Shown: positions 26,230 to 26,253 of the stretch, one piece after another
Layout of the letters: every line of letters starts with the position of its first letter
How positions within the stretch are numbered: position 1 is the stretch's first letter
NCBI GenBank assembly: GCA_976226885.1
Contig: OZ320323.1
Location: 41,974,001 to 42,038,000, forward strand
Direction: 5' to 3'
DNA length: 64,000 nucleotides
Origin: Iphione sp. A-MEVVRFRX5
Lineage: Eukaryota
The notes under the pieces: model-generated
The model's input: only the letters and a program-made list of their open reading frames with translations
The model's database searches: none
Told to the model about the DNA's origin: nothing
Made by a program: the position numbers and the translations under genes

Positions 26230-26253
26230 CTGTGGCCGAGTTCTGAATCTTCA
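26230..26253 (-). CDS. camk2: Candidate 24-nt alternative microexon inside the CaMKII hub (VKIQNSAT)
   Basis: Acceptor CTCTCTCTTCTTCCTTCGCCCTGTGCAG and donor CAG/GTAAGC. Symmetric phase 1 matches its host intron; no stop codon. Confidence 0.55.

Follow-up and report, generated by a model that had tools for sequence, protein, structure and literature searches.

A candidate 24-nucleotide cassette microexon within the hub domain of a lophotrochozoan CaMKII gene

To our knowledge, the CaMKII hub of vertebrates is treated as constitutively spliced, with all regulated variation assigned to the linker. The alternative exons of the vertebrate CaMKII linker tune regulation of the enzyme (10.1101/721589). 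Splicing within the hub has been described for mouse CaMKII-beta H, in which hub exon h2 is partly deleted through use of an internal acceptor and assembly of homomers is impaired (PMC5882894). Two elements of the hub are of particular interest in this context. Phe397 on helix D forms part of the lateral hub interface, and ring size is set by how helix D is oriented against the sheet (PMC4859805). The Trp403 loop borders the hub cavity. When it moves, the stability and stacking of the hub change, and a role in docking the kinase domain on the hub has been proposed for it (PMC11400628, 10.1101/721589). Among small neural exons, a UCUCUC followed by a UGC just before the acceptor AG is an element of SRRM3/4-dependent microexons (10.1101/2024.09.17.613571). 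Optional exons in the hub loop are already annotated, but undescribed, in mollusc CaMKII genes, and the candidate presented here adds to them rather than defining a new kind of system.

The window (the whole 64,000-nucleotide stretch of DNA that was analyzed) carries on its minus strand the 3' part of a CaMKII gene, composed of a linker exon and four hub exons:

45365-45454, minus strand: conserved linker exon, beginning GRSMIVKKTADGIKESTDSS...
32317-32392, minus strand: first hub exon (RKQEVIKLTEQL...EEYT)
30327-30421, minus strand: upstream constitutive hub exon (KYVDPQ...FYFDN, ending in phase 1), Pfam CaMKII_AD positions 27-56
22961-23075, minus strand: downstream constitutive hub exon (...QYID), Pfam CaMKII_AD positions 59-94
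19694-19814, minus strand: last coding hub exon, with the stop codon TAG at 19696-19694, Pfam CaMKII_AD positions 96-128

The peptides of three of the hub exons match PF08332 (CaMKII_AD) with E-values of 9e-10 to 7e-13, and the peptide encoded by 23075-22961 matches solved CaMKII hubs with an E-value of 1e-16. Kinase and regulatory exons are absent from the window, and the kinase exons must lie beyond position 64000. The nearest proteins are those encoded by Logan transcript P0308, 89.6% identical across the hub, and by JGI transcript P0174, together with the CaMKII proteins of Lingula, Capitella and Lineus, which places the animal among the lophotrochozoans; Lineus isoform X23 has a junction peptide identical to the one discussed below. 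The linker exon (45454) and the first hub exon (32392) both start with GTCGTA in the same phase. Skipping of the linker exon would keep both the frame and the Gly-Arg start, and may represent a splice option in the linker.

Other features of the window lie apart from the hub exons. In a GC-rich stretch downstream of CaMKII, a 434-residue open reading frame (3814-5115, minus strand) encodes a C-terminal CCHC zinc knuckle (Pfam PF00098, E = 4.6e-5) and looks like a gag-type retroelement protein. It is adjoined by a second reading frame of nearly equal length (435 residues, 5614-6918, minus strand) that matched no Pfam family. Scans of the window for Rfam families and tRNAs gave no matches, and there are four runs of N, either gaps or masked sequence, at 9704-9854, 42925-43097, 44870-45003 and 61605-61814.

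The candidate microexon is hosted by a 7.25-kb phase-1 intron that runs from 30327 to 23075 and splits the codon after FYFDN, in the middle of CaMKII_AD, after profile position 56 and before position 59. The upstream hub exon ends at 30327 with TTT GAT AAT G/gtaaag in phase 1, and the downstream hub exon starts at 23075 with ttttag/TA TTG TCC, again giving a phase-1 junction (slashes mark exon borders). Within this intron, reading of the minus strand identifies the following features:

26289-26293, minus strand: possible branch point CUUAU, with the A at -37, inferred from reading of the sequence only
26254-26281, minus strand: acceptor region, a polypyrimidine tract with UCUCUC (-28 to -12) and UGC at -5 to -3, followed by AG
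26230-26253, minus strand: candidate cassette microexon, 24 nt, phase 1-1, adding VKIQNSAT (equivalently KIQNSATV)
26221-26229, minus strand: donor gtaagcgac, which together with the exon end (CAG/GUAAGC) agrees with the consensus at 8 of 9 positions
24933-24977, minus strand: a second in-frame candidate, 45 nt long and much weaker, with splice scores of 5.8 and 4.5

Across the microexon the minus strand reads ...ttcttccttcgccctgtgcag / TGAAGATTCAGAACTCGGCCACAG / gtaagcga. A preliminary description of this DNA had proposed a 24-nt, phase 1-1 segment with near-consensus splice sites and a TGCATG upstream, and each of these elements was recovered on inspection. The segment at 26253-26230 contains no stop codon, the acceptor and donor score 7.25 and 7.11 in a simple consensus weight matrix, and 46 nt separate the acceptor from the end of the TGCATG, which occupies 26305-26300 of the same strand. 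The peptide that had been predicted for the included form, FYFDN-VKIQNSAT-V-LSKNNK, also agrees with our translation, and skipping gives FYFDN-V-LSKNNK. A recursive splice site or RS-exon at this position was considered and rejected: the junction with the upstream exon would read AAUG/UGAAG, which has no GU and does not regenerate a 5' splice site.

A segment of 24 nt is too short for any test of coding potential, and the strength of the splice sites was assessed by comparison within the window. The weight matrix is approximate and its absolute scores are rough, with little effect on ranking within the window. The four adjacent constitutive exons score 3.5-9.0 for their acceptors and 1.5-4.4 for their donors, versus 7.25 and 7.11 for the microexon. 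Over both strands of the whole window (128 kb), the microexon is the sole AG...GT pair spaced 3-51 nt apart in which both scores reach at least 5. Given the density of strong acceptors and of strong donors that we measured, chance alone would place ∼0.0008 in-frame, stop-free pairs this good in the host intron, or 0.025 at thresholds of 5 and 5. These values speak against a silent pseudo-exon, in which two good splice sites fall 24 nt apart by accident and are never joined to the hub exons. Such an accident nevertheless has points in its favor, as long introns contain decoy sites and a scan of a whole genome is bound to meet chance pairs; by our estimate, pairs of the quality of the microexon number in the tens per genome. 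The statistics thus make a real exon likely rather than proven, because a genome-wide scan also meets chance pairs of such quality. If the segment is unused, it is a very good decoy.

The sequence next to the acceptor provides a second line of evidence. The segment preceding the microexon AG contains UCUCUC from -28 to -23 and UGC from -5 to -3, an arrangement (with UGC no more than 10 nt from the AG) shared by 0.4% of the AG sites in the window and by only 5 of its 107 strong acceptors. Its presence further weakens the case for a pseudo-exon. We also considered whether the acceptor at 26253 serves another product, either a 201-nt in-frame exon ending at 26053 or an alternative terminal exon that would cut the hub short. 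The frame stays open between 26253 and 26053, where a weak donor scores 4.0, and isoforms with truncated hubs do exist in Patella vulgata, but the donor at 26229 is far stronger (7.1 versus 4.0) and is reached first, making this use of the acceptor very improbable.

The TGCATG upstream of the acceptor is one of three such hexamers that lie close to exons of the hub region:

26300-26305, minus strand: TGCATG (Rbfox-type hexamer), upstream of the microexon acceptor
30300-30305, minus strand: TGCATG, starting 21 nt downstream of the upstream hub exon
32262-32267, minus strand: TGCATG, starting 49 nt downstream of the first hub exon

Three of the nine same-strand TGCATG hexamers in the CaMKII part of the window are thus found less than 50 nt from an exon border, where ∼0.2 would be expected by our own arithmetic. 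This excess suggests that the hub region may be under Rbfox-type control. Where Rbfox binds usually determines its effect: from an upstream TGCATG, repression of the exon is expected rather than activation. The arrangement that would mark an Rbfox-activated exon is not seen here, as there is no (U)GCAUG within 130 nt downstream of the microexon. The UCUCUC...UGC arrangement at the acceptor is a more telling signal than the upstream TGCATG.

We next turned to relatives. The phase-1 intron after FYF(D/E)(N/H) is ancient and occupies the same position in Tegillarca, Batillaria, Capitella, Ridgeia and Patella. In four of these, the homologous intron was compared directly with the one in the window:

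Tegillarca: homologous intron of ∼370 nt, no counterpart of the microexon
Batillaria: homologous intron of ∼315 nt, no counterpart of the microexon
Capitella: homologous intron of ∼50 nt, no counterpart of the microexon
Ridgeia: homologous intron of ∼530 nt, no counterpart of the microexon

These four relatives are distant, and their introns are short compared with the 7.25 kb found here. A Logan genomic contig from a somewhat nearer relative (L001) likewise shows no candidate in its 1.2 kb of intron, and degenerate patterns of the spliced and genomic forms of the microexon found no match in JGI metagenome contigs. The transcripts of the nearest relatives (P0308 and L002) are of the skipped form, which says little because assembled contigs drop minor variants. 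An exhaustive search with the downstream exon, together with word searches, returned no protein of the source species either with or without the insert, and a search of sequencing runs with a 10-kb stretch listed no RNA run. There is no counterpart in the relatives examined, and the microexon, if real, is therefore lineage-specific. In the homologous intron of Ridgeia piscesae, a long pyrimidine tract ends in ttgcag/ATG/gtaaag (L006, 25074-25076), which could be a 3-nt exon or a decoy.

The absence of the insert from relatives' transcripts and of a counterpart in their introns fits a pseudo-exon, and the lack of a counterpart also fits a young exon that is spliced at a low level as noise, present in a small fraction of transcripts, free of selection and without a role in the hub. 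This second reading also draws on the mollusc inserts described below, whose unrelated sequences suggest that exons are easily and repeatedly born in this intron. Yet the flanks of the microexon, with their UGC, CU tract and TGCATG, and its very strong donor look more organized than those of a newborn exon, and we regard splicing noise of this kind as rather improbable.

The preliminary description had also suggested that a splice switch internal to the hub was not known from other CaMKIIs. At the level of databases that suggestion does not hold, as RefSeq isoforms carry inserts at exactly this junction. To locate them, we measured the distance from FYFD to NPHVH in ∼240 CaMKII proteins of lophotrochozoans and deuterostomes. 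An insert of 37 residues is located exactly at the junction in 24 representative isoforms from Octopus sinensis, O. bimaculoides and O. vulgaris (for example, at residues 441-477 of P0371 and 566-602 of P0468), and insert-free isoforms are annotated in the same species; the Octopus CaMKII gene spans 412 kb. In the limpet Patella vulgata, a 23-residue insert is present in isoforms X1-X7 and missing from X8-X11. When checked in the DNA, it corresponds to a 69-nt cassette exon (L007, 91124-91192) that is flanked by AG and GT; the intron that holds it measures 7.5 kb and separates the same pair of hub exons as the intron in the window. Isoform X5 of the clam Ruditapes has 3 added residues at the junction, and every isoform retrieved from Mercenaria, Mactra and Dreissena is longer there by 2 residues. 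The inserts at this junction therefore measure 3 residues in the clam, 23 in the limpet and 37 in the octopuses, and would measure 8 in the candidate. A literature search found no paper describing inserts at this hub site.

Bird KCC2D, Danionella, Scleropages, Rhynocoris and other fragment proteins also show apparent inserts, but these start with GK or are T-rich hydrophobic strings, and we discounted them as likely gene-model artifacts or intron read-through. Some Patella vulgata RefSeq isoforms (P0452, P0458, P0449 and P0450) end shortly after FYFDH or after ...YIDR. Those ending after FYFDH represent read-through into the same intron, and both endings would give truncated hubs. In Argopecten irradians, isoforms of 660-914 residues (P0008, P0264-P0271 and P0283) combine a long, acidic, repeat-rich N-terminal region with a CaMKII hub and have no kinase domain, recalling vertebrate alpha-KAP.

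None of the inserts in other lineages resembles the microexon, and the Octopus and Patella inserts gave only chance-level matches to the host intron by tblastn, a pattern that points to repeated and independent gain. Judged from these protein models, the hub loop is tolerant of inserts of 2-37 residues. That the segment in the window is in frame, has no stop and sits at the very junction where other lineages evolved optional exons speaks against an accident of splice-site spacing, and we consider a silent pseudo-exon unlikely, though it deserves real weight. The best interpretation of the combined observations is that 26253-26230 on the minus strand is probably a genuine cassette microexon, alternatively used and regulated, in a CaMKII gene of lophotrochozoan and probably annelid type, a reading to which we assign a probability of roughly 0.6.

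The location of the insert in the hub can be described with reference to the human alpha subunit, in whose numbering the junction falls between Asn401 and Leu402, four residues after Phe397. The flexible Trp403 loop (W403-P409) begins directly after it. Both elements that flank the site have been studied: mutation of Phe397 of helix D releases dimers, and the Trp403 loop is tied to ligand binding and kinase docking as well as to hub stability. The Patella hub and its insert were modeled with AlphaFold at low confidence (mean pLDDT 55); this model, used for rough placement of the insert only, shows it as unstructured, between the last helix and the first strand. The proposal in the preliminary description that the insert could tune oligomer size is possible because the insertion site lies four residues past Phe397 of helix D, which belongs to the lateral interface. 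The same site equally starts the Trp403 loop. Oligomer size is one possible read-out rather than the best supported one.

If the cassette microexon is used as we propose, its regulation might operate as follows. The default in most cells would be skipping, to which the small size of the exon would itself contribute, possibly aided by PTB-type binding at the CU-rich tract and by Rbfox at the upstream UGCAUG. In neurons, an SRRM factor with an eMIC domain could act at the UGC to recruit the early spliceosome, resulting in inclusion. This would add 8 residues to the link from helix D to the first beta strand, at the start of the Trp403 loop, and the NTF2-like fold should persist despite the insert. 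Inclusion would be predicted to alter the freedom of helix D, with effects on the lateral interface, ring closure and subunit exchange, and also to change how accessible the hub cavity is and how kinase domains dock on the hub.

If the microexon is used, it would mean, alongside the exons of octopus and limpet, that several invertebrate lineages vary the hub itself. One might go further and suppose that the connection between helix D and beta-1 is a recurrent, convergent splice switch of lophotrochozoans, in which neuron-regulated inclusion tunes holoenzyme stability, subunit exchange or docking between kinase and hub. We offer this extension tentatively and consider it doubtful at present; if true, it would constitute a regulatory layer of CaMKII that is absent from vertebrates. 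The natural insert variants would then offer structural biologists a test of how the loop controls stoichiometry, subunit exchange and calcium sensitivity.

The candidate shares features with four known groups of exons. Like the bilaterian neural microexons that depend on SRRM3/4 (eMIC), it is no longer than 27 nt (the range being 3-27), a multiple of three and free of stops, and it has a strong donor, a UCUCUC pyrimidine tract, a UGC next to the AG and a host gene in neuronal signaling. SRRM3/4 microexons are often deeply conserved, whereas the candidate is without a counterpart in the relatives examined. The closest match in position is to the Octopus and Patella exons, which occupy the same intron in phase 1-1 at a junction after FYFD(H/N) and have isoforms with and without the insert annotated within one species; the 7.5-kb intron around the Patella cassette is also much like the 7.25-kb intron here. 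These exons differ in length (111 and 69 nt versus 24 nt) and have no sequence similarity to the candidate, and they are backed by gene models and, in O. vulgaris, also by a GenBank protein, whereas the microexon is known from genomic sequence alone. The alternative exons of the vertebrate linker are likewise cassette exons of the same gene family, but they lie in the disordered linker, in contrast to a location inside the folded hub. With CaMKII-beta H and eH the candidate would share alternative splicing inside the hub domain, which in those forms changes holoenzyme formation (PMC5882894). CaMKII-beta H deletes hub sequence, whereas the candidate microexon would add 8 residues between two hub exons.
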